NCBI GenBank assembly: GCA_964247055.1
Contig: OZ176052.1
Coordinates: 3,534,001-3,598,000 of the forward strand
Source of the DNA: Paragordius varius
Taxonomy: Eukaryota; Animalia; Nematomorpha
Length of the DNA: 64,000 bases
Direction: 5' to 3'
Each line of letters starts with the position of its first letter. The first letter of the stretch is position 1. The notes beneath the pieces were generated by a model, which made no database searches, was not told where the DNA came from, and saw nothing but the letters and a program-made list of their open reading frames with translations. The position numbers and the translations under genes were made by a program. Shown here piece by piece: positions 26,417 to 61,734 of this stretch.

Positions 26417-26452
<36 letters not shown>

Positions 26453-33877: not shown

Positions 33878-34450
33878 TCTATATATTTATAAAAGTGGAA
33901 AGTAGTGGCTTGATGATCTATTTCCGGGAAACCGGTAGATCCATTCAAATCCAAATGTCGAAAAAATATAATCATTATTGATTCCCCGACAATATTCGCC
34001 CTTTTTTTGAATTAGGCCCCCAGTTCGGGCCTAACCCGTGTAAAACGGTTTTTTTTGAAAACAGAAGTCCACAAAAATCGTGTCTGAGAGAATTTTCTGG
34101 AAAACGTGTTGGACCATTCAATATTAAATATGATTTTTGTTTACTTATTTTCGATTGCGCCGAACATAATCGGTTCGCTTTTTTAATTAAGGTCATCTTT
34201 TTACCCGCTCCTCCCATAAAATGCCATTTTTCCAAAAAAATTCAAAAGTAATTGTTTAATCTATTTTTAGCCCAAGTAAAAAATATATTAGTATGAATGC
34301 ACCGTTTTAAAATTCCTATGAGATCATAGCTATTAAATGTTTCGAAATAATCCACATATGGGGTTCATTTTATTGTCCCTTTTTTCAAATAGCCCCCTCC
34401 CAGTCCGAAGGACTTCATCGGGCTGCGTAGCAGCACGAGATTTACGCTAG
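33878..34450 (+). mobile_element. Non-autonomous Helitron
   Basis: It runs from a|TCtatatatttataaaagtgg to cgggctgcgtagcagcacgagatttacgCTAG|t. Confidence 0.85.
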
Positions 34451-37071: not shown

Positions 37072-37763
37072 TAATCATTTTATCGGATATTTATAATTTA
37101 TGAGCTTAACATATAAGGCTTTAAAAACTCGTATAAAAAACGTGTTTTCTTTAATATACTAATATCACAGTATATAATTTTGATTGACTAGCTAAACTGA
37201 CTATTAAAATCTCAACATTCTTATTCCAATTGGTGTGGGGCGTGCACAAAAAAAGGTTGGGAACCACTGCCTTAAATGATGTTATTGGATGCATTTCCAA
37301 TTAACAGCTCTAATTTACATTTTAATTGTTTTGTATCATAATGTGTATTATCAAAATAAAATTTATTAAAAACTGTTTTATGGTGGTCGCAAATTTTATA
37401 ATTCATTTTTTAATTACTTGTTGGCCATTATTTAGAGAATTTAAATAAAAATTTAAAAATAAAAATTTTACTAAATTTTAAAACCGCAAGTTTTACATGT
37501 ACCTTATCATCGCGATAAGATCTGTAGTAAATAATTTGATATTTCATAATTATACTTTTGTTACTTAAAATAAATATAATGATAATAAAAATTACAACTT
37601 GCGCCTAAAATACGAGATAAACTAAGTAACAACTTTATATTATATCAACTAAGATAAAATATATGCCATCTACTTTTTCTGATTGCTAAATTGTTTGTTC
37701 TTTTATTAATGATGTTTATCATAACATTGGTATTATGTTGTTTTTTCGAATTTTTGGAAACAA

Positions 37764-38130
37764 TCTATATATTTGTAAAAATAAATGATGCTGGTGTGAT
37801 CTGTTTCAGTAAAACCGGTAGACCCATTCAAACCCAAATGAAAATATATAATCATTAATGAATGCCCCGACAATAGCTTTGCCCTTTTTTTGAATTAGGT
37901 CCCCAGTTGGGCGCACCCCGTGTAAAAAACGAGTTTTTTTGAAAACAGAAGTCCACAAAAATCGTGTCTTTGAGACAATTTTCCGGTGTTGGACCATTCG
38001 ATTTAAAATGTGATTTTTGTTTACTTATTTTTGATCGCGCTGAACATAGTCGTCTCGCTTTTTTAATCTAGGCCCTCATTTTACCCGCTTCCCCTGTAAA
38101 ATGCCATTTTTTTCAAAAAAATTAAGTCCA
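37764..38130 (+). mobile_element. Helitron 5' half lacking its 3' hairpin/CTAG
   Basis: It starts a|TCtatatatttgtaaaaat, and similarity to the family core stops at ~38130. Confidence 0.7.
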
Positions 38131-38206
38131 CACCACCAAAATTTTTTGGATTCTGAAAGCTCATAATTGTTTAATATGTAAAAAAACGTACTCTAAAATT
38201 TGACAG

Positions 38207-41200
38207 ATTACTGCGCATACAAAATATATAAATATTGTAGGTATACACATATATGGGAATATACATTTAACATTTATCAACAGAGATATCGAATAGGGGT
38301 CTCCAACATGCGGTCCGCATGGGGCCGTCCGAAATATTTTTGCAGACCGCGAGAAATTTTAAGAAATACCAAAATTAAAAATAATGCCATTTACAAAATT
38401 TAGTAAAATTGTTATCTATTAAACAAATTTTAATCTGAATACTTTACACATTTAATGAACCGCCAAAAATTGGTTAAATTAATTGATTACTATGTTCATA
38501 ACTTCTTTAATAAGGTTAGAAATCTAATTAAATATTTAATGCCCATATTTATTTAGAATACCGCTCGCCGATTTTTTTGAGTTAAAAATGCGGCTCGCAA
38601 AGCCATTTGTGTGGACACCCTTGATACATATAGATATCATACAAACAACACCTTTGTTAAAAATTAAAATTATATCATTTTTAATCATTTCACTTAGATT
38701 ATTTCTTCAATCTAGAAAAAATTCTTTTTGACATTAAAATTGGCCAATCTCCTAAAGACGCCTACCTGAATACTAACTCATGCTTTATCTATAAACAATC
38801 ATTCCGAAAGCAAAACAATACGCTTTACACTGAATATGTTTGTGATCCAATCGATTACGTCCGTTTTATATTTATGAAAAACAACTTAAATTTGTTTAAA
38901 CCTACATGCTTAGAAACAACTTGTTTTTCCATATTTATGGCTGATGTGAAGTTAAAGAAAATAGGTTTATAAAATTGCCTAAATTATTAGAATCCATAAA
39001 TACCAGCAATACTATCCACCTAATCAATATGGATAATAATGAAATTATAAATGAAAAATATAAGGATCCCGTACACACCTTATGCATGTAGTATAATAAT
39101 AAAAATAATAATATTTGCATTATTTATATTTAATTTTATTAATAATTTTTTTTAGCTTAAGTGGTGTTTTTACTTAATTTTCAACTTTAATAATATATTA
39201 TGATACAAAATAAAAATTTGGTCGTCTACTTAAAAACCGCTTTTAAACAAATGGTAAATACAACATTGAATGCAAACAGATTAATCTCAGCTTTACTCTT
39301 AATTATATTCACAATAGTGGATGATAATATAGGATTTTATATATCAGGGGCGTCTAACATGCAAGTCTCCGACACTTTACAAAAAAGTTGGACATTTGCA
39401 AAAAAAAAAGTTGTTATATTGTGTTTGCATTTCACCATGTTATGTTTGAAATCTAATACATTATTATTAATGAATGACAATATATATTTGAAATCGGCCC
39501 GTTAAGTTTTTTTGGGACAAAAATGGAGCCCTCTAAGCCTTTTGAGTCGGACACCCTTTATATATATATATATATATATATATATCTACATTAAATAGAA
39601 AAAGCATGGAATCAACCACACCCATTTTAATAGTAAATTTGGTCTCCGAATATGCCGTACATTACGTCCAATTACTCCAAGAGGATTTTGGTAATTCATT
39701 TAGTAAGTAGGAAAAAATTATAAAATTCAAAGTTTTAGGTAGCGGGCAGGGCGACGGGCTTATTATAACGAAACTACGCAATTTTACCATTATAAGGTCA
39801 GCCCTGGTTAGGGAGGCGAGTGTTATACCTTTCATGTGCTATAACTTAAGTCCTGACTTTCGAAAGAAACTTCATGCTATTAATTTATATATTAATTAAC
39901 TTTTTGGATGTATTAGTTTATTATAATTTTAAATGTTATGTTTTTAATATTTTATAGCGTAAATCAAAGCGTGTGCATGTTAAAATGGCGATCAGGATTC
40001 TAAATTAATATCTAAAAATAAATAAAGCGAGCCAATATCCATATTGTTATATTTTTTATGATATATAAGCTAATTTTGCAATTTGGCCACTAAAAGCAAA
40101 TAATAAAAATGTAATGAGGTTTATTAGTGAAAATCACATCTTTTTTAAAAAATTTGTACCATAGTAATTTTATTAGATCAAGAACTTATAATTGGAGTTG
40201 GATCAGATTTTACAGTCAAAGAGCATAAAATATGTGAAGTTTTATCTCCACATTTGCGATTAAATAAACGCTTTCATCGTTTTGGAAGACAGATATGGTG
40301 TCATTCAGGTAAACCCACCGATCTTAATTATTGATGTATTCCTACTATATTTTTTATATAACTTTTATTACATCTGTGCATATTATAACATTTAACTATG
40401 GTCTTATAGCTTTTAGCAAGAATAGATATTAGTTCCTACCTTTTCTGTATAAGAGACAATCTTTTGAACACACAAACTGATTACATATACAATAAAAACT
40501 AAAATTTTACGGACAAAACGTAAAAATATAAAGACAAATAATTTTTAAAAAAGACAACCAAACTTTTTTAAATCTTAATTTTTCCGACATAAGCTATTTA
40601 ACACTTGGATACATTCATTTCATTCTTTCGATTCAAATTGGGTAGTTGGTTACCCCAGGCCAGTTAAAAATTAAATTATTCAAAAGATATGGAGTGTGAA
40701 ACCATGGCAAAATTTTGCACATTTATAACATTTATGAATCGAAAGCAAAATTTTAAGGTAAAAATTTAGTCAGCATAACATGGCATTAGCTAGTAAAAAT
40801 AATACAAAATAACTTTTTGTGTTTCTATCAATGTTAGATGTGATTTAAATGAATAATTAGCTTTCATTTTAGCTTTAAAATCAAACAAGCATCATATTTT
40901 GCAAAAATGTCGTAAAATAAAAATGGCATCGAAGTAATTTGATATGGTACTTTTTTTTCAAAACCAAATTTTATTTAGATATTTCGTATTTATAATATTT
41001 TGATTAGGATAGAAGCGTAAATTAAATTGGGACCGTTTCTTTCAGTAGTTTTTTAAAAATTTCAACTTAAATATATTCTAGAGTATTTTATACCCCAATT
41101 TGAATCGAAGTGTTAATTACATTTGTAATATATAAAATTAATTTTTCAATAATATAATTCTCTAAGTCACACTTTACCATTTCAAACAATGAGTTATATT

Positions 41201-44200
41201 AAAAAATATCGTTGTCTTTTGGGAAAAAATATTTATATTATTACGTTTTGTCGTATAATATCAATTTTTAGTGTATATAATTTATATTTACTAAGGTCGT
41301 GTTTGACCGGTCGCGCTTATGAAATGGCCAAAACTGTAACCACCTATAAAAATAAGCATTAAAAAGCTTGATAATTAATCCCGTCCTATCAAGTAATAGT
41401 CCAAAATTTTATGCAAAATATCTAAAATTATAAAATCACCAATCTGTTAATGAATATATTTTCTGTTAGAGGTAAATGGATTTTATTATAGTTTGTTTTA
41501 TAATTATATTACTCTCCACTTTCATTTTTTGTGACTTGGGTTGGATCGTAAATGAAGGCATAAGAACGGTCGAGCGGTTATTCCCTTTGATGAGTAGAAA
41601 AGCAACTCCAGCTACTGACTAATTTTGCTTACCTTTTCTTTAGGTTTAATATCTGAACCAATAATTGGTCAGTATGTTAGTATCCGAAATGAATTAACAA
41701 ACCATTATTTAACTTATTATGGATTTTCAATTTGTCATCTCCAAGTTTTTGGAATTCCTACAGCTACGTCCACAATTCTCACCCAAAGGGATGTAATTAA
41801 AGTTGAGAAATATTTGATGAGTCACCCAAGGATGTATGGATTTGATGCAAATGGTGTCCGTTGGTGTTTGGGGAAAGCGTCAGATGACGTTTTTATTGTG
41901 AATTTAGCAATGGTTCACATCATAAAAAAGGTATACTAATATACACGGTTTATTTTTTAATTTGTATATTTTCCTCTAATTTTAACTTTCAAAAATGTAT
42001 TGATATCAAAATATAATTTATTTTATAATTTTTGAATATTATTACAACATACTAAAATACAGATTCGGTTTCAATTACTCATGAACGCACAAGTGAATGA
42101 TTATGAAACAATCCATTTTTATTTATCAGGTTTAAATATATATTGTTTTTACTCTAAAACACAGTTTTTATATTTAAATTACTAAATATTTTTTTTGTTT
42201 ACAATCCAATAGATAAACTCCTAATCCAAACTTATATTAGTAAAGATGCTTTCTCCAAATCCTACACTTGTGATATTCTTGATTTGAGTGATTTACATGG
42301 AAAAGTTTTTTACTCAACATATCCCTTACTTTCTATAACATGTAATGGTTTGAAACCCCATGCCAGATTTATAGTTTTTAAAATGATGAAAAATACAGAT
42401 TTTTTCATAAATCCACAGCCTCGAATATCTTTTTCCTTGTGTTTAACCGATGTGGAGATCATCGGTCAACTGCATCATGGTATTTTTGCTAATGATGAAA
42501 TTTAACTTTAAGAATAGAAATAAAAAATGCTTTTAATTTTTATTACAATTAAGACATAATTTTAAGGAAAATTTATCAATTTTGTCTTTTAATAGTAAAC
42601 TTGAAAAATGTTTCTTCAATAAATACTTTTGTTTGCATCCTTCTTTTCCAGGTTTCAAGGATTATATTTGGATTTTACCGCACAAACCCATGATAATCTT
42701 TATAAAACAGCAATCGAAAGATGGCGCTTTTTTTGATTCAGACCACCATGGTCAGGATTGGATAAAATTGAATTGTAATGCCCGAGGAAATCACGTGATA
42801 TATTGGGTTGATTCTCACGGCAAAATATTTGATTATTGGAATGAACCAATTGTATTTCCATTCCATACTAATAAATCTAATGATATTAACTTACGAACTA
42901 GACGGCATCACTATTACAATTTTTATCAATATGGTTTACGATATGATGGCACAACCAATGTAACTTTTAGTCAATTAAACATTTCCAAATTTTATTTGAG
43001 ATATAATCACATAAGTTCATTTGTATGTTGCATCTCCGCTGCAGATTGTTCAATGAGACAAAAAATTATTTTTACAGGTAAGGAGTTTTGAATAATTATC
43101 TTAATATTACTAGATCAATTGATAATTTATTTTGTTCTATGTTTTACACTATACAGAATATATATATCCTCACAATTTTGGATTTTCTGCGCATTTCAAT
43201 TCAGAAAATCAAAATTTAGTACTGAATGGTGAAATATTGGGCGGATTGGAGATAGAGGATATTACATTTTTAGTAAACGATAGGTAAAAGTATTTGTATT
43301 ATTATATATTAGAGACTTCCAATGTTTAAATGTTTATCAGATAGAATTCGCATTAAAAACATTTTGTTACACACAAATATCTATTGAACCCGAAAATGTC
43401 AGTAAATATAATATTACATTCAAATTTGTGGCATCTGATCAAAGCTTTACACTGACCAAATTTATAGTCAAAGGTAAATCTTAAATCCAAATTATCTGCA
43501 ACATTAATTATTTTGGGAAATGCTTAGATTTTATGTTAAAAACGAATTCAATGGTAATCAAACCGCCGTTTACGGGCCACATGCGGCCCTAAAAGTTTTT
43601 TTATGGCCCCGAATTATTTATTAAATTATTTGATATACTTATTTTGAGTATATATATCTGTCTTTCAAACATCCCTGAAATTTTAATCGGTATTTTATGG
43701 TGCTAGGCCCAAGATAAATATTTTTTGCGGCCCTTTAACTTTTTTTGGCAAGTATACTACTGATCTAAATGTTGCGTTAACTCTGACCCTAAATGTTAAT
43801 AAAAATGAAGAACTTCCATTTAATCTATTAAATTTATCATATAAAAATTTATAAATGTATCTAGATTATGAAACTATTACCATCTTTCCTCAACACCCGA
43901 GTAATATTTATCACACTCCACGCTTAAAAACGCGAATCTTAAAGTGTTCAATAAATCCAACCATACCATATTGGTATACCCTTTATTCAGTTTCCAAATA
44001 TGGAAAAATTTATCCTTTGAGTACAATAAAAGACACTAGCTTACGAATCGTTCTTGCCAATAAAATTGACGATGACGATTATATGTCTATAAAACGACCA
44101 CCAATTACACTTTATGATTTTGTTGCCCTACAAAATCAATATGCATACAAATATATTTGCAAAGTCTCAACACCTACAAAAAAGCTGGAAATTTCCTTCA

Positions 44201-47200
44201 CTTTAAATGGTTTTAAAACGACTCGTTATTATGTCAGAAGGCATATAATGAAATTACATTATAATAATAATAATAATAAAACTAAAAAAAATGTTCCTAA
44301 GAAATTAATAAAAAAGCGTCATAAAAGAGAAGAAACGGAAAGTAGCGTTGGAACAACAGAGAGTCTACCATCATCCGATCATGATACTGAATCCAATAAT
44401 TCCGACATTTCTAATCGAGAAATTATATATGCGCATACTGATACAAAGGTTTATAGTTTTTGTTTTACTATTTAAATCTAACAATATGCTGGTACGGATA
44501 ATGCATTTTTTAAATGGGTGTGAGCCGTTATCAAATTTAGTGGGTTATTTGGTATAAACAAAAAATAACATGAACTAACTGTCTGTTTTCAATTAATAAC
44601 ACCAGGCAACATTTGACTTTTAGGGCCATTATAAATTTAAATTTATTTCATTAAAGTACTAAAAAGTAAATTTGATAAAAAAATTGGTCAAACACCTAAG
44701 AGTTCCGGAATCGGAATTACAATGAATCTTGTCTGCCAGGGTGCGACTAAAAATCTACATGTAAACCAGGAGTGTCCCACATGTGGCTCTCAGAAATTCT
44801 TTGTGCGGTCCGCAAAAAATTGGAACTTCATAATTTGCAAAAATAGGATCAAAATCTTATTAAAATTAATAACATATAATTTCGTCTATTTAATTGGCCG
44901 CGAACTACATAATTGTTATATAGTTTGCAATTTGCAGCCTTATTGACAAAATATAATAGTTCATTATAATTGCCCATATATATCTCAAATACAGCCCACG
45001 TTTTTTCAGAAGTAAAAATGCGGTTATTTGTTGTAAAGACCCCTGATGACTAATATCATCCATAAAAACATTAAACTCTTTTTTTCTTTTTTTTCTTCTC
45101 ACATTGTTTTCCAATACATAGGTTATAATGGTTTGCACTAATTTAAATCATCGTATACAAGATGTTGCACTCAAGCTACAACACGCTGATAAAAAAATTC
45201 GATTTAATTGGTACAGAAAAAGTAAGATAAATCAAACACCAGAATTATATACTCATCAAGGGAACCGTCTAACTTTTTCTTCCGTAAAGACAAAGGATGC
45301 CGGAATTTATTTCTGTAAAATGAACTCGACAAACCTTGAACATCATGTAAAATTGCAAAAAAACAAAAATCACATCTTGAATGCTTATAACCTTAAAGTT
45401 TACCGTAAGTTATCACGGTTGAATTAATTGAATCATAAGATAATTTTTAAAAGGAACTAAAAATGGAGCTTTGTTGTCAATAAAAATTATAAATATTAAG
45501 TTATTAGATAAGAATATTTATAGAAAAAGGACTTGGAAAGTTAGAAATGATTACTAAATAAAAAAATATTTTTGATATGCATGTTACGCATTGTTAACTT
45601 GTAAAGATGAGGAGATAATATAAGAAATGTGAAATGAATTATTTATTTGGTTTTTTAGGGTTTATCTATACTAATTTTAGTTGTACATAATTTGCATTAT
45701 ATCAATAAAATTTCAAGTAACAAAGGATATAAAATTTACATAGTGCACAAAAAATATAGAAAATAATACAAGTCAAATAGCTGAAGGTTATGATATACAA
45801 CTAAGATATGTGTTTCAAATTTGTATGTAACACAGAAAATTATGATATTAAAAATAAAGTGTATCTTTCAGATTTGCATAACATCACTTCCCCCTTAAGA
45901 GAACCGGACCGGCTTCCGCCGAATTCTCTCGGGGTAACGACGCTCGTGCGGATTTGCATTGATATTGTCATTATTGCTATTAATGTTATCATTACTACTT
46001 TCATTATTATTATCATTTATTTTATCATTATTATTGTCATTACTATTGTTATTATTATCAATACTACTACCCATTATTATTGTTATTGTCTTTATTACTA
46101 TCATTACTATTGTTTGGAGTAACCGGTGCGGTTGAGTTGGCCGGTAGGTCTAAGTGTTTCAACTGATCTGCATGCTTTCTGACAATCTTCTGGTTTACCT
46201 GATCCCACACACTGTACGAAAGGAGACCCGTTCTATCAACAACATCGCCGGCTCGCCATCCAGGATTTTGTTCGTTTCTCATCATTATGGGTTGGTTTAA
46301 TGAGAACTCACGGCGTGGACGGGGTGCGTCTAAGATTGTTGCTTTTGAGTTGATCCAGGTGAGGGGTGTTTGAGATACTCGTTTAAAGAGTAGTTGAAAC
46401 GGGGTTTCTTTTGTAGTCGCATGTATTGAATTACGGTACGACCATAAAGTGGTATTGAAAGCTTCTTGTGGTGAAATATTATCATTTTTGATTTTTCTAT
46501 ACTTGCCCTTGAGGGTCCCCACTAACCTTTCTACCATCCCATTACTTTTAGGATGATAGGGGGTTACCCTCACGTGTTTAATACCCAGGTTTGTTAAAGT
46601 GGATGTGAAGTACGAATTACTAAAATAAGAAGCATTATCACTAATTACCGTCCTCGGAAACCCAAACCTGGCAAAGGTTTCCTCGAGTTTATGCAATATG
46701 TTTACCGAATTAACCCGTTTTAACATGAACCCTTCCGACCATTTTGATGAGCTATCAATCAACAACAACCAATAATACCCGTCAACTGGTCCCGCTATAT
46801 CGATGTGTAACCGCTCCCATATCGCAGCATTTGGATCCCATTGATAAGTCGGATTTTCACCTAGGCTTGGCTTGTTTACTTGACATGAACTGCATTCACT
46901 GTATTTTCTTACCAAATCGTTCTCTAATTTTGGCCAAAAACAGGTAAACCTTGCCATTGCTTTCATCGTTTCTACATTATTATGCCCGCTGTGTAAATAA
47001 TTGACTACATTTGCCTGTAAGCTTTCTGGGATGATAATTCGATCGTTTAAACTGAGCAATCCTATTGGTACGAAATCTCTCCCTTCCGGTTCGTAAACCC
47101 AGCCAACTCAACATCACTCCAATCTTGGTTATGAATCGCCTTAATTACTTTCTGCAAATTAACCGTCTCTCTCCGAATTTCATCGCGACTTAACTGAACG

Positions 47201-50200
47201 TTATGACAATTTAGGAACCTAAGATGTCTCGTTACCATGTAGTTTCTATCAATTGTGTCAACATTATCTTCACGGGACATCTTGACAAGTAATCGGCTCT
47301 ATTTTTCGGACCCGCTTAGTTCAAAATCATAATCATTCAGTCGGTTAACCCAACTTAAAACTTTCGCATTCTGAATTTCTTTCAAATTTTTATCCCTATT
47401 TATCAACCTAACCAGTGGTAAGTGGTCTGTCAAAATTTCAAACTTTCTACCATAAATGAAGTTGTGAAACTTTTCTAATGCAAAAACAATAGCCTTTAAT
47501 TCCTTTTCTATCGTGGTGTAGTTCAATTCTGCGGTACTACATTTTCTTGAACCATAGGCAATGGGCTTCCTTTCACCATTTACAACATGACTTAAAATAC
47601 ATCCAAACCCTATATCTGAGGCATCGGTCTCAATTACTAACTTTTTAAAAATACTTGTTCACTTAATAATTCCTCAGCGGCTTTCCAACAATTCTCATGT
47701 TTTTCCTACCAGTTCCATCTGACGTTCTTACTTGTTAAACTATGTAAATCACTTACAATCAATTGAAGCTTGGGTATAAAATGGAACGTTAAAAATCCTA
47801 GAAAACTTCTTAAAGATTTTTTATCCACAGTTTTTTTAAAATCATTGATTGCTTTTACTTTATTCTTGCAAGGACTTATACCTTTATTACTTATTTCAAA
47901 TCCCAGATAACTTACTGAAGGTTCACCAATTTTTATTTTATCTTTTCTTAATCTAAAACCTGCTAATTCTAACCGATTTAAAACATTATTAAGATTTATT
48001 AAATGTTCCTGTTCAGATTTGCCAGTTACTAAAACATCTAAAAATGCACAAGTGCCGGGACAATCTTTTATAACCTGGTCCATGACTCGTTAGAAAATTA
48101 TTGGTGCTGTTGACAGTCCGAAAGGCATCCTTTTGTAGCAAAAAAATTCTTTGTGAGTTGCAATTGTTAGGAGATGTTGTGATTCTTTGGTTGTGGGCAT
48201 TTGTAGATAGGCATCTTTCAAATCAAGTAAAAACTTGACCTTCGCCAATCCTACTCCCTAAATCATCAAACGTTGGAATGATATGAGAGCCTCAGTGAGC
48301 CACTTGTTGATCGTAACTATAAAATAGCTACAAATTCTTACCTCTCCATTCGCTTTGAGCACATTAACGGTGGGCGTGGCCCATGTCAGAGGTGTAAGGT
48401 TGGGATCTATAGGCTCCAGAATGTCTAACTTTTGTAATCATAATAATTCGTTTTCAACTTTTGCTCTTAGGGGAAACGGTACTCGGCGGCAAGGCCAAAC
48501 TTTGGGGGAGGCATTGGGTGCTATATGAATTGTAACTGGCTCAATGTAACAACCTAATTCCACTTTAAATAGATTAGGGAAATTTTCAATAATTTTATCA
48601 AGTTTAAGAAAGTTAATTCGTACTTTAGGAATGTCGATGTTGAATCTCGTGATCCAATCCAAGCCACAAATGAGCGGTGCCTTTGACATTTTTTCTTTCA
48701 ATACACAACATTCTGCGTTCCCCAAGTTTTGCCCATTGATTTGCACTGTGACTGTTGCTACGCCCAGTAGCGGTACTATACTATTATTGTAGGCTTTTAC
48801 TGGCGGTATGGGTCTAATATTTGGCTTGCCAACTTGTTTTTCCAGGTTTCAAAGATGATAACACTAATGTCAGCTCCAGTATCATAGATAAACGTTTGTT
48901 CTGTGTTGTTTATCATCATTTTTACGGTCCATGGTGAGGTTGGCATTGCTTTTCTATGGATCTGGCGGTTAAACAAATTTTTGGCAGTGTTTTTGATCTA
49001 CACATTTTTGCGAAGTGATGAGGTTTTCCGCATTTATTGCAATTGCGGTTCCAGGCAGGACGTTTGTTTGGTCCATGGCTATTACCACAACGATTGCACG
49101 AATGTGTTAGGGGTTTTGCTATTGGCTGTCGTGAACGCATGGCCTTGTTATTATTATTGGTGTGTTGTAATCGATTTAAATTATTACCATTGTTATAATT
49201 GGTATTACCATTATTGTTATGAATGCCAGCCCTGGCAGCCTCGTGTGCTAATGCGAGATCCACTATCGTTTCTAGAGGCACGGGTTGTCCGTTGATCTCG
49301 GCATCGGGATACCTTGAATGTATATCAATTTCCAATTGCGGTTGCCGTAAACCAATGACGAAAGCGAATCCGTTCCTCAATTGAATCATTGAATTTTGCC
49401 TCTTCGGCTGCGATCTTTACCCGTTCTAGAAATTGGGTAAACGATTCGGTGTTGTTCCGCACAAGTCGAAAAAACTCAAATCTGCTTTGGAATTTTGACT
49501 TTGTGGGATTGAATACCTTTAAACCCGTTGCCATTATCTCGGTCCATGTTGCATCTTTTATCTTATTCGGATAGAGTCGTTGGTTGATTTTGCGTACAAC
49601 CATTAGACCACTATAAGCAAGCATGGTTGTTTTGAGAGCTTGTTCTGTTACAGGGATATCTTTTGCCTCCATAACATTTGTCATATAATCAACGTATTCC
49701 TCAAACTTAATATTATCATTATATTTCTCGATGCATAGGTTAGCGAGATTGATTGGCGTTGTCATGTTCGATTGGATATCGGTAAGACCTCCACTAGCAC
49801 TAGATTAGTTCGGTACTCGTCTTGGCCACCAAATGTTAACTTGTAAAGATGAGGAAATAATATAAGAAATGTGAAATGAATTATTTATTTGGTTTTTTTA
49901 GGGTTTATCTATACTAATTTTAGTTGTACATAATTTGCATTATATCAATAAAATTTCAAGTAACAAAGGATATAATATTTACATAGTACACAAAAAATAT
50001 AGAAAATAATACAATTCAAATAGCTGAAGGTTATGATATACAACTAAGATATGTGTTTCGAATTTGTATGTAACACAGAAAATTATGATATTAAAAACAA
50101 AGTATATTTTTCAGATTTGCATAACACGCATGTTGACTCTTAAAGTTACTATAGTATCTTCTGGAAGTTTTTAAATAAAAGCGTGTAAAGTAATGAGCTC

Positions 50201-51044
50201 ATTTTGATCTTTATCCACAGTTTAATTTTTTTAATTAGGTCCTAGTTTAAAAACCCTTTATAGTTGGCTATAACCTTATATCAATTTATTTACTGAAAAA
50301 AAGAATTATGCAAAACCTATTTTTTTCTCACAATCGAATTCATATGAGATAAAGCATCTACTCTGCACATATTTTTTGTATATTAAATATAGAGATTCCA
50401 TTAATTACAATAAAAACGATTCCTGAATCAAATAGTACCAATCTTACCATAATTTGCGAAATTGAGAAGGGAGTAAGGATAGCTAAGGTAATTTTTTCTA
50501 AAAAAACATAAAATTAATTTTTTATATATTTAACATATTGTTGATGTGCTTTTAAAAATACGATATTAAAGACTTAAAAAGCCAAATACATTTTGATTTG
50601 AATCTTTTGAATGAGATGTCCTAATTATACTCATTAAATCTTCATTTTTTATATAAGATCATAAAAAAATTTAATAAGACAAAAAATTTAAACATTGGAT
50701 TTAAAAATATTTTGATTTTTTTTGAGGTACCTATCTTTATTTCATTACCAATTCGTTTAACGGTGATCGTTATATCTACATTTATGCGGCGGTATATATT
50801 CTCCTTTTTTGTTTTTATGGGATAAAACTTAAAGTTTATTTTTGGTGAACAGAAACCTTAAACAAGCGCAAGGTTACAGTCATATGAATAAATTATGCAG
50901 TTGGTGTCAATATATATTCGCTTATACAACCTATTGTCAATTATCAAAATGTTTTTAATAGCAGTTTATTATTAAATATTGGGTTTAATTTAAAAACTTT
51001 ATATACACAATGTCAAAAAAAACCTGATGATATATATATATATA

Positions 51045-51082
<38 letters not shown>

Positions 51083-54000
51083 TGATAGAAAAATGTATCA
51101 GGATTATCATGGTGCTTTTGGTTTTAGCCTTTAAGAGTAATTTAATAAAGTTTACACTTTTGTGGTGAGTGCTCCATATCAAAAAATGGCAAAATTTTTT
51201 GAATAAAATTTTTTAGTGAAAGCTAGAGGCTTAATTCCAATCTTAAATATATCATAAACTACATATGAAAAGCAACACAATATTTTTGGGCTTCAAAAGT
51301 CCCACATTTTTTTGTTCTTCTAATATGAGCTATTTTAATTAATGCTAAATTTTAATTTCAACTAAAATTTTTTTTAAAAGAGATGCATACTTTTCACAAT
51401 AATTTTTAGCTAATATTGTTGAACCGTGTGATTCATACTATATCGAACCATAATAAACGGTTTAGAAACGGTTAGTTTTATTAAAACACTTTTTTCATAT
51501 TATTTGATGATGCTGAACATTTTATCACCTAAAAATAATAATTTATAGTTTGTTTGCTTACAATTTCGGGTTATTTTTTGTAAAAAAAAATTATATTTAA
51601 AATATATTTAAACACGAACAAATATTTTAATCATTTGAGGTGGTAAAATTTTTACCATCATATTTATAGAAATTGTTTTTATTAATTTAAGCGTTTTTAA
51701 ACCGTTTCCATCATGACTCAAAATAGTATGAAGTACGCTTCAACGGAATTTTAAATTTAAAAAAATCATGCTATTTTTAAAAATATTTATAGTTGATATC
51801 AAAATTTAGCATTTATTTGAAATTTATATTGCGCAATCCCTGAATTGCTTTTGACTAGCTGATTTTATGAGAGTAAAAAAATGATACTTTCGGACACACT
51901 AAAAATTAAAATTTTTTAAAACATCGTTTCTTTTTTATATGTAGTTTATAATATATTTTATTGATATTTTTGGAATGAAGCTTGTAACTTTTATTAAAAT
52001 TATTTACATATTATGATTTTCTGATTTGGAGCACTTACCACAAACTGTGAATAATTTTCTTATATCAGTCGTAAGGGTTAAAATCAAAAGCACTATGATA
52101 ATCCTCATTTTTCTATCAGAATCTATATATTTTATCAGGATGTTTTACTTTTCGATTTTGGACGCAGTGTATATATAAAGAAAAATATATCCATCCGGGT
52201 TTGAGACTCATTAAAATTCAGGGTGAGTTTTACACTCTAATTTTAGTTCAAGATTTTGACTCGTCTTGGCAACGAAATTAATTAATCTATTAAACACCCT
52301 TAACAAGGACATAATGATAGTTTTTTTATTTTCGAATATTTGGCCTACTATCTTCAAATGTTACGTGTTTTTTTGGTGAAGCAAATAATCTCCTATTAAA
52401 TTATTTACATTATATCATCACGGAAGAGTTATTGGATAAATGGCAACAAAACTTTTGGTGAACTAACACAAAGAATTACAACTTCTTCTCCAACTCTCTC
52501 AGGTGATTGGATTTGTATTTGTGAATATTATCTCCCAATGCCCTCCTCAAATAAAACATTTCAAGCAAGTCGACATATTTTTATTGAACCAACAGGTGTT
52601 GCTATTATATATACCATTTACACTTCAAAGTCACCCTTGAATAAATATCAAAATTAACCCTAAAATAAATTGTGTTTTTTAAGTTAAAAAATTACTTATA
52701 TTTTTTTATATTTAAAAAAAGAAATTAGATTAAAATTAAAATAATACTCAAAAAATAATAAACTATGTCATAAAGATATATGTTTCATATTAATTGTGAG
52801 TTATATTAGCCCTAAAACACATAACTTATTTTTAGGGTGAATTTGATATGTTCGAGGGTGAATTTGAATTGTTCAAGGGTGAATGTGAATTGTAAATGGA
52901 TATTTCTTTTAAAATTAATCATTTTAACAAATTTTTAAGGAAACGATTTGTGGGAGTTACAGACACTATACAGACTCCACTATTGTTATATAAATATGGT
53001 AAAGGGAACAATATGTATCATGAAATGATTAAATATTGTTTTTTTGATAATTGAAGGCTAAATTTCACATAATAAAATGTGACCAAATTACTTTGTTTAC
53101 AAAAAGAGTCGAAGCAAATTTAATCATGCTGTCAATACTATAGAGCCAAAAATTAATTATAATAAGTATTAAAATAATAGGTAAAAGTTGGCCCGGACTT
53201 TGTTAGTTACCTTTAGGTCGAAGACTTAAGTTACTAGCAGGCCTTAAAAAGAAACTAATTTGTTGTTTCGATTCATACTAAAAAGGGTTTTAATTCACAA
53301 GTGCTTATCGCTTATAAAATCAACGTTCAATAAAATAGTCTGTTTAAATTGTTTTCATCATGTTAACAAAAATTTGCAAGTCTCAATTTAGTAGCTCCCG
53401 GCTTTAGTTTCAATTATTTTTGCAGGTCCAGTACTCCTTTTTTGGACCGGAGCTAGTAGTAAACGCTTAATCTATTCGAGATTGTTAAAAACCGTTCGCT
53501 TTTTCTGGTTCTGGTTCCATGCTCTAAATATTTAAATCGGTTTTGCAAATTACCAAGCCAAATGTTAAAAAGATGGTTTTTTACATATATGGATAAAAAA
53601 TTATACTGCTATACTCCTATTTGTTAAGATACTACTACAAAGAAAATCTTTGTCGCAAACAATGTAAAGTATGGGATAGAAGTCAAAAGCAGCATAGAGC
53701 TGATGTATCGAACAGAACTGAATCAAATTCAATGGATCAAAAATGATGAAGTAATTAGCACATCAAAAAGTTTAGTCATTGCAGAAGTCTCTGAGTTTCA
53801 TGCTGGAAATTATTCTATAAATGTGCAATCAAATGTTGTTAGAACTTTTACCATCATCGTTTTGTGTAAGGTTTTCTCTTTTCAATAAAATTCTTGGGCC
53901 AATTACAATATAATCTATTTATAGTAAATATTGGGAATTATACGGACAAAACGTAAAAATATAAAAGCAAATATTTTTTTCAAAAGACAACCATATGTTT

Positions 54001-57000
54001 TAAATCTTATTTTTTTTATTATAACTCATTGTTTATGATTGCAAAGTCTGAATTAGAGATATTTATTGGGAACACAATCAATTATATATATGTATATATA
54101 TTATTATTGCAATGAAATAATTTGTTTGGGAAAAATTAGGTTTAAAAAGTATGTTTGTTTTTATAGTTTTACGTTTTGTCCGTATAATTTAAATTTTTAT
54201 TGCAATATTTGATAAAGATGCTCCAAAATTACATATCAAGCACAATACTCAAGTCATTAACGAATCTAGTATCATACATGTGAACGAATTCGATGCCGTT
54301 AACATTACAGCTCGTGTGCGTGCCTATACTAATTTCAAAGTTTATATAAGAATAATTTAACATACCTATTCATAAATTTTAAATTTAAATATATGGTAAT
54401 ATGATAAACATGGGCAAAAAATATTTCAATTTTAACTTTTTATTTAAATCGCTTCTTACACAATACTTGCAAATCGCTTTATAAAAAAGTTAATTTATTA
54501 ATATTTTTATTCATAAGATTATTTGGTCCAAATTGAGCGATCAAAACAAAAAAATCGAAGAAAAACAATTGTATTTTTCCAACATTGGAAGGGTAGATGA
54601 AGGATTATACAATGTCACATTGATCGTCGATTCATTAGTTTTGGATGAAATCGTTCCGGCAAAAATTTCCTCCTTATATTTTTCTATCAATGTCAAAGGT
54701 ATATTAAGTTTTTTGTTTATATTACTATATCTTCAAATTTTAAGTGTCCTTATTTTGTGTGCCTTATAGGGAGGAAGCCCCCAGTATATATATAACTAAC
54801 AATTATTATATATATTATCTCTCTATTCACCATTGAACACACTTTCAAATTCTTCCCGGAACATTACAAAATAAAAAATTATGTCTCTTATAATAAAATT
54901 TATTATTTTTTGCCTATATAATGAACGTTTTTTTATGATTAACGATATCTAACTATTTTAGGGTGAGTTTAAAGAAAAGGGTTAATTTGAGTTATTAGTA
55001 CCATTTTTAGAAATTTTATCCTGTTTTTCAAACAAATTTTATATCAAAACAGTAAGTGGTTGCCCAATGTTTGATATGAATTACCTGAAACCCATGGGTA
55101 TTGGCATTAAACTTTTGGGAGGAGAAAATAACAATAACAATAATAATATGAAGGACTTGCCTCCGTTCGCACCTTACAATCAAGTGGTTGAATGGTCTTG
55201 CAATCAAACCATGTACGGTTTTATTCAAATAAAATGTCTTTATTCGGGGGAATGGGATGCTGCTGCCCCTTACTGTGGTAACTGACATTTTAATGTTTTA
55301 TTATTTTGCAATTGATGGCTAAAACATATGTGCTTTTGTCTCAAAGGATTTTAGTAACAATAAAAGTTTGTGCGGACTCTAATTTTTCAATTAATTAATT
55401 TTATTGATTTTCGAAATGAATATATAGATGGAAGACAATAAGCCACAAAAATTTATTACATCCTAATTCCTTTAAAAAATCCAAAAAACAAAATAGAGAT
55501 CAATTATAAATTAATCACACTATAAAAAAATTTATAATAAGGATAAAATTCAAAAAATTATTTTAGATCTGTTCGCGGTTTGCGGTTTTGCTAATCAATT
55601 TTAATATCTAATATAATAATCTACAAAAATAATCAATCATAAATACTTTTAAAATGATAATATTTTAGGTTGCAAGCTCCCTGCAATATCACACGGATAC
55701 CCATTCAATGAAGGTGGTCGATGGCGAATTATATGCGAAAAAGGCTATGCTATTAAAGATCCACGAATATCTTGTAAAACAACCAAACTCTCATGTGAAA
55801 GAAGTAACTTTTGTAACTAGCGATCATAGGGTTTTTTCGATCTAAAATAAAATCCCATTAAATTTATATATATTATAAGATGCAAATTGATAATTAGAAT
55901 GTGATGTGGATGATGCAAATCGATACAGCTTTGAAAGTAGTCCTTTATATTCGTTTGATGGGGAGAAACGGGATTTCCAATGTCACATCACTGGTGAAAT
56001 TCGAGGTGTTCAAGAAAAAGTTTGTGAAAATGGTTCATGGATTAATGCAGACACCTGCGTCTCCGGTATAAATTGTCATAACCAAGATAATTTTGGTAAA
56101 CAAAAAAGGGGTTATTACCAAATTAGGGGCCAACACAAATGATTTGCGGGCCGCATTTTAAAAATATATGGGTCATTATATATTTTAATAGATTTCATAC
56201 CCAAGACTCTATAATTTCACGACAACTAATAAACACTATGCATTTCACCAATCTAGTTCGTTGCCTAAATTTATTAAAAAGTCTTCAGATTATTTGGTTA
56301 AAAAATACCAATTTAGCATAAATAACTATGAAAATAAATATTTCTTTGGTAAATATTATTTTTACGCGTTCCACGGAGGGCCGCATGGGACATTCACTAA
56401 ATTACATAATAAAGGCATTTTAATGGTTGCTTATTACACAATATAGTAGGGTAATTCGCAACACAGGAGTGTATGGGAAAAGCAACACAATGTTTAATAA
56501 TCAATTATTTCCTTTCATATTTCCATACACTCATGTGTTGCAAATTGCCCTACTATAGTATGAAATAAGCAACAATTAAAATGCCAACTGTATTTGTAAG
56601 CAAAAAAACTAGTTTATTTATCACTTATTATTATTTAATTTTATTTAATAATTGTGAACTCAATTCGATTTCCCAATTAATATATCCCTATAATAATAAT
56701 TTAATTTTAGAGTAAGTATATTGAAGGATTATTAATTTAATTTGTTTAACTAAAAAAGTTTTATATAATATTGGTAAAGTTTTCACGGGGCATTTTTGTT
56801 TAGATAATGAATAAATGAGGATATATGTTAGTATATATTTACAGGATGTCCGTCACCAAATATCAAATTTTCGACATATTCAAGTAATTTTTTTATTTTA
56901 CCGCATACTGTCAAATTTATTTGTTATTCTAAAAACAGCATTTAATTTTTTACATACTTTTATAAAGATTTTTAAGATAGAGTAGAATATAATAAATTTT

Positions 57001-58660
57001 AGATAGCAAATTATTTTTATAACCTTATTTTTAATAACATATTAGAATACGACAAAAACACCCTACGAATACTTCTCCGAAAACGTGATGATGAAGGTGA
57101 GTTTTATAAATTAACTGTTTACTAAAAAAATAAATACCTAAATGTTAATGGACCCTTTTAAAACTGCGAAGAATATGTAATTAACTAATTTAAAATCTAG
57201 TATACTTTTAACTTGTACATTCATTCTACTGTGTATGATTAAATAAATAAAGGGTTTTTTTACAGAACAAATTATTTTTCCAATTAATTTTTTCTAAATA
57301 TTACAGTATGAGTAAGTATACATTGCTAGAAAGTTATTAATTATTGCCAAGTAGTAGATACAACAAAGGGCAGTATTATTGGCTAATAATATTAAAAAGT
57401 TAAAAAAATAATTCTATAAGCCAATAATACTGCCCTTTATTGTGTTTACTATTTGACAATAATTAATAACTTTTTAGCAATGTATACTTACTCATACAGT
57501 AGCTAACAAATATATATATATGTGTGTGTGTATGTATGTATAGAGATTAAACCATCAAACGATGAAAATGAAAAAGTGGATCAAACTGAGAAACCAGTGA
57601 CCCTTACACCCATCAATACTGCCAACGAAATTAACACTCTTAATTTGGGTAGGGAAGGTTTAGGGTTTGGGGTTGCAAACAATCGAATCGGAGAAAAGGG
57701 AGAATACCTGGACAAAATATTTCGGATTGGTACACGCCTTGAAATTCATTGCGATTTTATTAGGGTTCGAGAGGGTGGTGATTTTGTAACTTGCATGAAA
57801 AGTGGTAATTGGGAACCGGTAGTTAGTTGTTCAAGTATATGCTATAGTTCAAGAAATATTTTTCTTGTTTTATATCAATTTGCAAAAAGTTGTTGATATT
57901 AAATTTTATCATAATTTATACATCTCGGCATAAACAGTTGATTTATAGTTGTTTTTAGCGATGAAATCAAAGTTTTTTTTTAAATTAGAATGCAAAGGGT
58001 ATGAAACCATAGGCCTTGGCCTAAAAAATGTGTCAGACCCATCACAACGTATGGGACAGATGTGCACAAATGGTAATAGCCTTCCAACCTTTGATATCAA
58101 TTGTAATGTTGTCAAGAGAAAATGTCAAACTGGTAAATAAATCATTCTCTACTTAAAAAAATTTATTAGAATGTGTGCAACCATTGATTGAAAATGGGAA
58201 TTTCAAATTTTTAACCACGACTCAACGATTCACTGTAAACACCACTATAATTATTAATTGTAATGAAGGATTTACTCTAGATCACCCAAATGACACGGCA
58301 GTTTGTTTGGAGACAGGGTGGACACAAATGCCAAGATGCGTAAAAGGTAATGGGATGTATATTGTTTTTATTCTGTAAGTATTTATATATATTTTAAAAT
58401 TACAGCTTATTTAACATTTAAATGACTGGCATCAGATTGGGTCTATGTGATAAGTAATAACCGTCTGAATGCATAAATACGGATCTAAGGCGTTGTAAAT
58501 AGGGGACTAAGTGATTTTTCTTTGTTATTTAATTCAGGGTACTTCGGAAAATTTATAGGGCATGTGCTTATACCCATAGGTACAAAAATTGTGGTAAAAA
58601 ACTGCAAAACGTTTGTTTTTATATGGACATAAAAATTGTATACTTTTATTAATTTGAAGT

Positions 58661-58723
<63 letters not shown>

Positions 58724-61700
58724 TTTATAACACAAAATATATAGAGCAGTTTTTAAATACATCATTTGTAGGGTGTATGTTTGAAGGGGATGAACCTCAG
58801 ACCCTAATAGATATAAACACAAACCAAAATGTTTATAAAGTTTATCCTTTGGAAACGACATTAGTTGTCCGTTGTCCCGAAAAGATGCGTCTTACACAAG
58901 ATTCCAACATGAATTGCTTGAATGGCAGTTGGGATGGAGTTCCTAGTTGCGTGAAAGGAGGTACAAACTCTATAAATTAAATTTAGAGGTAAAAAATAAT
59001 TTTAATTTTTTGATAAAAAAAAATATTTAAATTTAAAATAGGCAATTAATTTTTCAATCATATTAATGTTTTTATAAAAGATCTACCGCTAAAAACATAT
59101 TCTGAATTATACGAATTAATTTTTATTGAATAGAGAAAGCTAGTGCCAATTGTGAAATCATAATTATATTACAAAAGTGTTAAAAGAAAATATTTGGGAT
59201 TTTGTTTAACAATATATATTAATACTGGTAAAAAACCTAATAAATATAAGTAATGTAGGATTGATAGATAGATATATATAAAATTTTATGTTGAACCGGT
59301 GAAACAACCACGTAAATCTTGCAAATATACAATTTCAATTTTTATTCTTTGTAGATGTGTTTTCCCATTTTAAACATAACTAATTAAATTAACTATTTTA
59401 TAGGTGGAATATCCACTATAGTAATTATTTGTGTAGTGGTATTCATCATATTAATTTTGGCATCTATTGTTTACATGGTCATCAAATACAAGCGACAAAA
59501 TAAAGGTACTTTATGACATTAAAACAATTAATTAACTATTCTGGTATAAATCATCTTATCACAAACCGGTTTCCTGCAAAAAGGGACGATATTTATGGAT
59601 AGAACTTACCAACTTTCAGATCGAAATTAATTTCATCTTGCAAAGAAAAACAAACTCAAAAATTATTTTAAGGAGTCAGCTTTTTAAAAAATTATTGTTA
59701 TAAATTTTTTATTTATAAATTATGGTTAAAACTTGTTTATCTATGAAAATATTAAAAATATATAATTAAAGCTTCTATTTCAGTAAGCCATAACATGTGT
59801 TAAGAAAAGTGGCTAGAACAGACATAAACCCGCGAATTGAGGATTCAATATTTGCGAAATCATGTTCACAAAATCTTAATAAAATTAATTCCAAACAATG
59901 TTCTGATCAGTCTATTCAATCGGAAACGACTAGAAAAAAATGTTATATTGTATTTTCATTTTACAGTCTCATGTTTGAAATTTAACCTATTTATGAATGC
60001 CCTTATTCTGATTTTGAGATATAATCAAAAGTATTTTTTAGGGTTGAAAGTGTGAAAAATCTAAGCACTATTTTTTGGCTTTTGTCATTGGTAGATTAAC
60101 AAAATTTGTGTTAAAACATGTGATCGTTCAGCTGAGGTGGTGGAAATACAAATATGTTTTTTTAAGAAAATTTATATTTAAAAATTGTTAGGCTTGTTTT
60201 TACATTTATAAATTCAGATTATTGCTCAAATTTTACTTGAAACGCTCCCATTTTATATAATACACTCAAGTATCAAACGGACTAAATTGAGAAGCTATTG
60301 TGCAAAACAAACGCATAAAGCAAAACTCCCCTGCTAGTTTCACATTTTATGAATCCCAAATATAAATTTCTAAATTTTATGAAAAACTTTTGATTTTATT
60401 TCATCTGATTTTTGCATTTTATACGCTTTACTTTGTTACTTCCAAGCTTATCGAAACACATGCATCTAAGTTATTAATAACTATTTAGTGAATAGCAAAG
60501 TTTTCGATTTTGATTCATAAATAAAAATTTATTATAAAAATTCTTTAAAAATACCTTTTTCTTTAGTTTTTCGGATTCTGTAAGCTGGTGATTTCTCTAA
60601 CTATAAATACGTAAATAAAATAAATTTCACCCTAAATTAGACCCATTATGTAAATATAATGAGTTTATTTATATCGATTAAAATCAGGGTCTAAAACCGG
60701 AATAGACCCATTTCATAAGGTTTTTTTAAATTATAGCAAACTTTGGTCTTTTAGTACTAAAACGGTTACAAACTTTTTTAAAAAAAGTGGACTACTACCA
60801 AAATGGATTTGGTTTTGAGCCTTAAGCGCTAATTCCTTTAGAATCTCAAAAACCTTGGGTTTTTGTAATTTTAATCTTTTTTTGAAGAAATATTAATTAA
60901 TTATATTATTATAATTAACATTAAAGCTTTGGAAGAGCAAGAGGAATTGGATATCGTTGAAGCTCCAGGTAACCTATTTTATTTTAATATGGTTTATTAA
61001 TTTTTTGTTTAACTCTTCATTAGATATGTATTTTTTGGCAGCGATGACCTTTTGGGGTAGTATTCTATTAAAGTAGTTAGCAAACAACTATGAAAGTTGT
61101 TTTGGTTAAAATTTAATTATCAAAGACTTTTCTATTGTATATAAACACTTATCATTTTAGAGTTTTAACTTCTAGTGTCCCGAGTTGTGACAGAAAACAT
61201 GGTTAAAATAAACAGCTGATTTTAATATAATTAAATTTCAAGTATTGCTAGTAAAAGCAATTTAAGGGCTTAATTTAATTATTAAATTTGCCTGTTAAGA
61301 CGCGGAAAAGTTTGAGATGATCATTTTTTACACTTCTACATTAAAAAATTGTATCATGCGCCTAAAAGGCTAAAGAAATTTTTAAATTTGGCCCAATACT
61401 AGTAATATTTTTATGATATTTTTTGAATGACCTGGGTATTAAACTTTCCTAAAAGGTCACGAAGCGTTAAAAAACTATAACGTCTCCCTTAATATATTCA
61501 GTATATTGTGTAAACAAAAAACTTACAATTATATATCCATTTAACAATAAAAAGGAGCAAGATAAAATACATTTTTAATTGAATTAATTTAATATAGAGC
61601 AAGAAGTATCTGAATATGCGCCGACTGAAGCTACCGAAACATTGTACCATTATACACATTTTGAATTTGTGGACCCGAAATTCGAAAAATTGGAACAATC

Positions 61701-61734
61701 AGAAATTTATGCTTCGGAAAACGATCCAAAATAA
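38207..61734 (+). CDS. Multi-exon type I membrane receptor: FTP/fucolectin-like x3, Ig-like x~7, sushi/CCP x~7, TM, acidic cytoplasmic tail (5' end and signal peptide not located)
   Basis: Phase-compatible GT-AG exons were joined by hand. FTP-like exons are 38207-38240, 38698-38964, 39599-39690, 40177-40308, 41644-41930, 42063-42129 and 42213-42464 (FDIKIGQS...C; GQYVSIR...FSICHLQVFG; ARFIVFK...SLCLTDVEIIG). Ig-like exons are 42652-43077, ~43157-43473, ~43863-44450, 45122-45410 (FNWY...DAGIYFC), ~50392-50486, ~52422-52596, 53629-53866 and ~54218-54697. Sushi exons span ~55037-58960 (e.g. CVQPLIENG...CNEGFTL...CLETGWTQMPRC). The TM exon 59404-59505 reads IVIICVVVFIILILASIVYMVIKYKRQNK. Tail exons are 60927-60968 and 61598-61734, with AATAAA at ~61783. 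Confidence 0.85.
38294..38623. mobile_element. hAT/Charlie-like MITE
   Basis: It runs from taggggtctccaacatgcggtccgc to atgcggctcgc...ggacacccttg, termini typical of hAT-derived MITEs. Confidence 0.6.
39345..39558. mobile_element. hAT-like MITE; related remnants at ~43550-43760, ~44735-44940 and ~56125-56400
   Basis: It runs from caggggcgtctaac to cggacaccct and contains internal cggccc/gggccg motifs. Confidence 0.55.
45592..50126 (-). mobile_element. Full-length but decayed Ty3/gypsy LTR retrotransposon (Mag-like), antisense in a receptor intron
   Basis: The LTRs are 45592-45883 and 49834-50126 (TG...CA), with a 5-bp TSD CGCAT at 45587-45591 and 50127-50131. On the minus strand the PBS TGGTGGCCAAGACGAG is next to the 5' LTR and the PPT AAGGGGGAAGTGA is next to the 3' LTR. 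Gag has a CCHC knuckle (CNKCGKPHHFAKMC). Protease, RT, RNase H (YTTIEKELKAIVFALEKFHNFIYGRKFEILTDHLPL) and integrase (46067-47059; WERLHIDIAGP, VISDNASYF, PYHPKSNGMVER) follow in gypsy order, broken by frameshifts and stops. Confidence 0.96.
51006..52169. mobile_element. Tc1/mariner-like non-autonomous element; related partial copy at ~62960-63300
   Basis: TA-flanked ends ta|cacaatgtc and gacgcagtg|ta; long imperfect inverted repeats include ctgatagaaaaatg...gattatcatggtgcttttggtttta. Confidence 0.6.
57304..57499. mobile_element. Hairpin MITE (Tc1/mariner-derived, TA-flanked)
   Basis: Near-perfect inverted arms of ~80 bp (cagtatgagtaagtatacattgcta...tagcaatgtatacttactcatacag), with TA on each side. 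Confidence 0.7.
58665..58721. repeat. (TA)n microsatellite; others near 450, 12780, 26420, 39560, 51030 and 62610
   Basis: Directly visible TA dinucleotide runs. Confidence 0.95.

Follow-up and report, generated by a model that had tools for sequence, protein, structure and literature searches.

Mosaic surface proteins built from immunoglobulin (Ig) and complement control protein (CCP, or sushi) modules serve in adhesion, synapse organisation, complement control and self/non-self recognition. Selectins present a C-type lectin domain, an EGF module and a CCP array above a transmembrane (TM) helix, and their short tails carry sorting information based on tyrosines; Drosophila Hikaru genki joins Ig and CCP modules in a secreted protein of the synaptic matrix. 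In Drosophila Furrowed/CG9095, an F-type lectin domain is followed by a C-type lectin domain, a CCP array and a TM helix (PMC5712786). Here, we analyze a 64-kb window (the whole stretch of DNA examined, positions 3534001–3598000 of contig OZ176052.1; G+C about 27%) in the 110.5-Mb assembly of the nematomorph Paragordius varius, and describe a gene in it whose protein is a new variant of this mosaic Ig/CCP adhesion-receptor kind. A real-looking, intact, single-copy gene occupies the + strand of the locus, and we assign a probability of roughly 0.6 to its being one gene that spans at least 41644 to 61734 and whose product is a type I membrane protein, glycosylated and large (at least about 1500 residues).

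To build the gene model, we listed stop-free segments, read the DNA and recorded the phase of each AG and GT; family, sequence and fold searches were run exon by exon, and the exons were joined in local scripts that checked whether the frame was continuous, searched for motifs by regular expression and computed shuffle statistics. This yielded a 22-exon chain on the + strand between 41644 and 61734 (exons b to v in Table 1), in which every border is AG/GT and all phases are compatible. The joined exons form 1523 codons with a single terminal stop (61732–61734, by local script), and an AATAAA lies at 61783, 49 nucleotides (nt) past the stop codon. A codon log-odds model trained on exons versus introns and applied leave-one-out scored above zero for each of the 22 exons, every one of which beat both of its off-frames. 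Frameshifts and in-frame stops are absent (0 of 22 exons), transposon insertions are solely intronic, and the introns of the model contain no further strong exon candidates. Two ultra-short GT..TTAG introns, of 29 nt (43284–43312) and 37 nt (58133–58169), are obligatory for the frame between complete modules. The ectodomain of the joined model carries 23 N-x-S/T sequons and 46 Cys.

These observations bear out the + strand multi-exon gene that a first reading of the DNA, hereafter the original prediction, had placed here. They also uphold its claim that an Ig-like array and a CCP array belong to one protein, as a single frame runs across both blocks into one TM helix, and within the joined frame neither a terminal exon nor an internal start with a signal peptide separates the blocks.

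The array of about seven CCP modules proposed at the outset is recovered as seven exons (n to t), and phase 1-1 exons such as these are usual for shuffled extracellular modules. A CCP module typically has about 60 residues, four Cys and a conserved Trp. Five of the seven are canonical, with a C..C..C..G-W..C pattern; exons o and r encode shorter, truncated variants that keep four Cys but lack the Trp, and exon q is preceded by a linker and is missing its first Cys. Exon s matches Pfam Sushi (PF00084) at E 8.4e-9 (36.1 bits versus a cut-off of 20.7), and exons t (0.03) and q (0.09) match it weakly. Searched against PDB sequences, a profile of all seven exons found factor H at 3.7e-61 and CR1 at 1.5e-40, then CR2, factor XIII B and beta2-GPI; it also matched single CCP structures at 1e-5 to 1e-8.

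Downstream of the CCP array, exon u holds the sole strongly hydrophobic 19-mer of the joined model (approximately residues 1449–1475). The cytoplasmic tail that follows comprises 52 residues with no enzymatic domain, and one of its tyrosine motifs, YTHF, conforms to Y-x-x-hydrophobic. The single hydrophobic helix, basic stop-transfer and acidic Tyr-bearing tail of the original prediction are thus all found in exons u and v. The product is most likely a single-pass type I membrane protein: the TM helix, stop-transfer and tail are clear, and the signal peptide is a candidate one at 41476 or 37709. The intron before the tail exon also contains a possible 42-nt phase 1-1 cassette exon (60927–60968, + strand) that would encode the acidic peptide LEEQEELDIVEAP and that ends in a good donor, CAG/gtaacc.

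Between the head and the CCP modules lie about seven beta-rich modules, which the original prediction had taken as an array of about seven Ig-like domains. That count stands, and the Ig assignment holds to different degrees along the stalk. One module lies above the Pfam cut-off (exon h; ig PF00047, E 7.2e-7, 29.9 bits versus a cut-off of 21.8), one matches weakly (exon k; Ig_2, E 0.0024, under the cut-off), three show a Cys...Trp...Cys pattern, and two are unassigned. These last five (d, e+f, g, i+j and l+m) have a pattern only or none and gave no Pfam or PDB match; exon g was also without a match in a word search of protein databases. Among the seven modules only the h–k pair is alike, with a local-alignment z of 3–4 for exon k against the exon h Ig domain. 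AlphaFold2 modeled exon d entirely as strands, at a predicted local distance difference test score (pLDDT) of 33, too poor for a fold search.

The head of the protein had originally been read as three tandem domains, here called copies 1 to 3. Short motifs are indeed present in all three (I-x-IG...C, [GA]-x-[YF]-[VI]-x-[IF] and FS[IL]C...V..G), but only copy 3 is complete, copies 1 and 2 are partial, and repeats lie in the space that the rest of them would need. The three copies are not significantly alike in shuffle tests (p 0.04, 0.15 and 0.97). We conclude that the head modules may number one to three.

Copy 3 consists of the end of exon b, mini-exon b2 and exon c', and at 169 residues with four Cys it is the sole copy complete by canonical splicing. 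Exon b has a strong acceptor (pyrimidines at 17 of 20 positions), a phase 0 donor (AAG/gtatac) and a codon score of +0.21, and it found no match in Pfam or among PDB sequences. Mini-exon b2 is proposed because exons b and c' are otherwise out of frame; it is preceded by an AG at 42061–62, ends in the donor CAG/gtttaa and keeps the open reading frame (ORF) continuous, with a neutral codon score. The acceptor of exon c' has pyrimidines at 14 of 20 positions, and the 16 codons directly upstream (42164–42212) score −0.43, which is intron-like. A longer version of this exon with its acceptor at 42164 (exon c) was set aside in favor of b2 and the 42213 acceptor, as the dinucleotide preceding 42164 is CA and the added codons are those that score as intron.

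Exon a, together with the first 35 residues of exon b, makes up the C-terminal two thirds of copy 2. Its donor (CAG/gtaaac) is in phase 1, the acceptor phase at 41644, and its codon score is +0.16 bits per codon, with no Pfam match. The exon tentatively given to the N-terminal part of copy 2 resembles the start of copy 3 at the pattern level only. We rejected a one-base frameshift in the A6 run at 40147–40152, which would fuse 40069–40161 with exon a, as a 38-nt intron offers a canonical solution and homopolymer errors occur in no other exon. For copy 1, the candidate exon at 38698–38964 scores +0.13 bits per codon, at the 92nd percentile of intronic ORFs; it has no Pfam match and is weakly similar to exon c' (blastp E 0.31, shuffle p 0.04).

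High-copy short repeats, with at least 299–347 candidate copies genome-wide, fill 38323–38680, 39394–39568 and 39769–39857. They take up room that copies 1 and 2 would require for their N-terminal parts, and cover part of the first exon of the original prediction. The first two have several genomic matches in common and so belong to one repeat family, and the repeat at 38323–38680 sits directly 5' of the candidate exon of copy 1. An N-terminal half of copy 1 at 38540–38697 was rejected: it falls inside the high-copy repeat and offers no canonical in-frame splice. Direct repeat units about 430–575 nt apart, together with inverted copies of that same element, are also seen at 35540–37100, 33980–34250 and 37840–38125, and the 10 kb 5' of the gene are repeat-rich.

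The 5' end of the gene bears directly on the number of head modules. No start codon or signal peptide is present at 38207, where the originally predicted receptor region begins. Among ATG-led ORFs in 27.8–41.6 kb, the one at 41476 is by far the most hydrophobic (Kyte-Doolittle 3.96), and a weaker signal-peptide candidate lies at 37709. It is possible, though on balance somewhat unlikely, that the gene starts at ATG 41476, spliced to 41644 or 41764, and encodes a single head module, in which case 38698–38964 and 40165–40308 would be decayed older tandem copies or chance ORFs. This start offers the strongest hydrophobic core upstream of exon b in a good context, and its phase 1 donors are compatible with both acceptors. 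The signal peptide that a type I protein requires is not evident 5' of copy 1; moreover, the N-terminal parts of copies 1 and 2 need introns of 26–38 nt in a space partly filled with repeats, and the head copies show no significant similarity to one another. However, the donor GTTGGA is weak, the exon has a negative codon score, and Phe/Ile/Leu-rich ORFs are common by chance in T-rich introns. Splicing to the strong 41644 acceptor would leave a 35-residue module fragment with an unpaired Cys at the mature N-terminus, and both 38698–38964 and 40165–40308 are coding-like in codon score with exactly compatible phases.

The original prediction saw in the head three tandem F-type lectin (FTP/fucolectin-like) domains of a glycan-sensing adhesion or immune-recognition receptor. 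The F-type lectin domain is defined by a fucose-binding motif, H-X24-R-X-D-X4-(R/K), and a cation motif, hhDGx (PMC5712786). A regular-expression search, in a relaxed form too, failed to find the fucose motif in copy 3 or in the + frames of 38000–42500, in agreement with the earlier remark that canonical fucose-binding residues are not recognisable here. The cation motif is likewise missing: copy 3 contains no DG dipeptide, and no hhDG[NDS] occurs in any + frame of the same interval. Pfam hmmscan of every head exon, at E up to 1–5, gave no match. Six-frame genome scans with PF00754 (F5_F8_type_C) and PF22633 (F5_F8_type_C_2) found matches on C6, C10 and C11 only and missed the locus. PDB sequence and profile searches with the head returned no lectin, and the matches to EFR3, FOXG1 and IKK-beta are noise. 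A word search with exon c found no homologue. When HMMER compared this exon with 1.84 billion representatives, it matched two repeat proteins, a zinc-finger array and an aRib-repeat protein, both of which were discarded as spurious.

Several observations nevertheless favor an F-type head. By motif, the three copies resemble the C-terminal half of the F-type/discoidin jelly roll (I-x-IG...C...F-x-C...G-x-YV-x-I...FS-x-C-x-x-x-V-x-x-G), and the exons at 38698–38964 and 42213–42479 are equal in size (267 nt) and phases. The ESM language-model neighbors of exon c (run on 42164–42478) all belong to the galactose-binding-like clan, namely DOC/APC10 (0.91), SUN and F5_F8_type_C (0.88–0.89), a weak signal below the recognition threshold of the tool. 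The tail of copy 2 also matches the C-terminal discoidin exon of a CNTNAP gene in the same genome (pairwise E 0.004), in a 26-residue pattern match from a comparison chosen post hoc. Finally, F-type lectin domains combined with CCP arrays are known in both Furrowed and SpCRL (PMC5712786).

Set against the failed family, genome, structure and motif searches, and against the dissimilarity of the head copies and the repeats that fill the N-terminal parts of copies 1 and 2, these points leave three tandem F-type domains distinctly improbable. ESM neighbors of copy 1 are unrelated. An F-type lectin domain would fold as a jelly-roll beta-barrel of about 140 residues; the AlphaFold2 model of exon c' consists of strands only, at a pLDDT of 42.7 that was too poor for a fold search. 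The FTP identity of the head is unsupported, and the glycan-sensing function inferred from it is therefore unsupported as well. The only strong F5/8C match of the genome, at about 5.47–5.48 Mb (C6:5466001–5486000, − strand), belongs to a gene of the CNTNAP/Neurexin-IV type, whose exons encode discoidin, LamG, EGF and fibrinogen-like domains; we considered this gene as a relative of the receptor gene and rejected it as the CNTNAP/Neurexin-IV orthologue.

We regard as doubtful, too, that the head modules are very diverged, lineage-specific galactose-binding-like (F-type/discoidin) jelly rolls that have lost the canonical fucose and calcium sites and stand two or three in tandem on the Ig-CCP stalk. 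If this were true, an under-sampled phylum would have put together a selectin-like lectin receptor independently, and its architecture (jelly roll × n, Ig × 7, CCP × 7, TM) would be one not described elsewhere.

The original prediction had proposed a search for paralogues in the genome; with exons b, c and d, the tail exon and a two-copy head profile as queries, the only match is the locus itself. Its picture of a lineage-specific receptor is consistent with this result and with the lack of homologues for exons c and g, but not in its glycan-sensing part. By sequence comparison the gene appears lineage-restricted; orthologues of its Ig/CCP part in other phyla are possible, the large HMMER search having been made with head exon c.

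A number of points weigh against a single large receptor gene as we describe it. Its exon borders are predictions from the DNA, and GT/AG sites and open frames are common in DNA of 27% G+C. Mini-exon b2 and the upstream 26–38-nt introns are tentative, there are two candidate starts, and the sequence 5' of copy 1 yielded no signal peptide. Statistical tests support only two of the seven Ig-like modules, the AlphaFold2 models of exons c' and d are unusable, and the proposed function is drawn from the architecture. Still, it is very unlikely that the model merges two or more genes or that the locus is an unexpressed pseudogene. In favor of such a reading, the public protein sets searched do not contain the gene, and its introns carry transposons, including a 4.5-kb long terminal repeat (LTR) element. 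Against it, the frame stays unbroken through all 22 exons (1523 codons), which include neither an internal start with a signal peptide nor a terminal exon between the blocks; codon scores are positive throughout and every transposon insertion is intronic.

Taken as one gene, the locus suggests a model for the protein at the cell surface. Outermost would stand one complete 169-residue, four-Cys, beta-rich head module, perhaps preceded by one or two partly rebuilt copies (38.7–40.3 kb). About seven Ig-type or Ig-like modules would form the stalk beneath the head, followed by seven CCP modules, the membrane helix and the 52-residue tail. By this architecture the protein would most likely be an adhesion or recognition receptor, which may work at the cell surface on the selectin/Furrowed principle, with a putative ligand-binding head held off the membrane by a semi-rigid Ig/CCP stalk. 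The tail could control surface level or signaling, with YTHF as a predicted sorting signal and the other tyrosines, in their acidic context, as candidate phosphorylation sites. A large, intact, single-copy receptor with an orphan Cys-patterned head is a candidate for lineage-specific cell recognition or host interaction, and the locus is a useful test case for annotating AT-rich genomes with introns of 29–37 nt.

Table 1. Exons of the receptor gene model, candidate 5' exons and the intronic retrotransposon, in window coordinates.
Feature	Position	Strand	Description
Candidate exon, copy 1	38698–38964	+	C-terminal part of copy 1; 267 nt, phase 1-1; size and phases equal those of exon c'
Tentative exon, copy 2	38991–39087	+	N-terminal part of copy 2; acceptor phase 1, donor phase 2; 26-nt GT..TTAG intron from 38964
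Tentative mini-exon, copy 2	40070–40126	+	57 nt, phase 1-1, then 38-nt intron; codon score neutral
Exon a	40165–40308	+	Middle of copy 2 (I-IG...C...W-C); phase 1-1, in frame with exon b
Alternative first exon	41476–41539	+	ATG in good context (A at −3, G at +4), then 16-residue hydrophobic core; phase 1 donor compatible with acceptors 41644 or 41764
Exon b	41644–41930	+	End of copy 2 (GQYVSI...FSICHLQVFG) and first 58 residues of copy 3
Mini-exon b2	42063–42129	+	67 nt, phase 0 to 1; inferred
Exon c'	42213–42479	+	267 nt, phase 1-1; C-terminal 89 residues of copy 3
Exon d	42652–43077	+	142-residue beta-rich module; Ig-like by Cys/Trp pattern only
Exons e + f	43157–43283, 43313–43473	+	Unassigned 96-residue beta module, split by the 29-nt intron; no Pfam match
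Exon g	43865–44448	+	Ig-like module (C..W..Y-x-C), Asn/Lys/Ser-rich linker, strand A of next Ig
Exon h	45122–45404	+	Bona fide immunoglobulin domain; donor ACC/gtaagt
LTR retrotransposon	45592–50126	−	Antisense in the h/i intron
Exons i + j	50393–50487, 52427–52595	+	One Ig-like module in two parts (LTIICE...YWING...GDWICIC); pattern only, no Pfam match
Exon k	53629–53865	+	Ig-like module without Cys pair
Exons l + m	54218–54339, 54518–54698	+	Ig-like module without Cys (W...DEGLYNV); pattern only
Exons n, o, p, q	55053–55277, 55669–55803, 55898–56065, 57544–57834	+	CCP modules, all phase 1-1
Exons r, s, t	57989–58132, 58170–58346, 58772–58960	+	CCP modules, all phase 1-1
Exon u	59404–59505	+	Transmembrane helix and KYKRQNK stop-transfer
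Exon v	61598–61734	+	Acidic cytoplasmic tail with four Tyr (YAPT, YHYT, YTHF, YASE), stop codon

The LTR retrotransposon in the h/i intron, which contributes nothing to the protein, has 292-nt LTRs (45592–45883 and 49834–50126) that are 94–96% identical. It has TG..CA ends and a polypurine tract and is flanked by a 5-bp target duplication (CGCAT); its minus-strand gag, reverse transcriptase (RT) and integrase ORFs are in several pieces. Elsewhere in the window, the upstream neighbor of the receptor gene (about 12860–27760, + strand) has several exons and encodes a BAZ/Toutatis-like chromatin factor, in which two PHD fingers and a WSD motif are present. Further upstream, 3639–4295 on the + strand holds a large CTU1 exon (cytoplasmic tRNA 2-thiolation protein 1); its best identity, to assorted metazoans, is only 49–52%, and the database therefore holds no close relative. 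A non-LTR-type reverse transcriptase at 951–2599 (− strand) carries a PHD-like finger after the RT domain. An Rfam scan of the window found nothing.

Among described systems, Furrowed resembles the receptor as a type I protein whose long CCP stalk bears a putative binding module at its N-terminal end, and canonical fucose-binding residues are missing in CG9095 as well. By contrast, the receptor has no C-type lectin domain (neither Lectin_C nor any other lectin family appeared in the Pfam scan of any exon) and inserts about seven Ig-like modules between head and CCP array; its head is unrecognised by F-type or F5/8C models, and no sequence homology to Furrowed was detected. The working principle proposed for the receptor is also that of selectins, in which CCP modules raise the head above one TM helix and a short tail that carries Tyr-based sorting information; this likeness is one of architecture, and the receptor differs in its head, in the lack of an EGF module and in its added Ig array. 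Hikaru genki likewise unites Ig and CCP modules in one extracellular protein, but is secreted, much smaller and without an extra N-terminal module. Factor H, CR1 and CR2 provide the best matches to the CCP profile, and CR1 and CR2 share with the receptor a CCP array followed by a TM helix and a short tail; all three are nonetheless pure CCP arrays without an Ig array or separate head, and the match reflects module type rather than orthology. CNTNAP/Neurexin IV is a type I receptor with a galactose-binding-like head (discoidin, LamG/EGF, TM), yet the remainder of its architecture is unrelated, and its match is confined to the 26 residues in the tail of copy 2.

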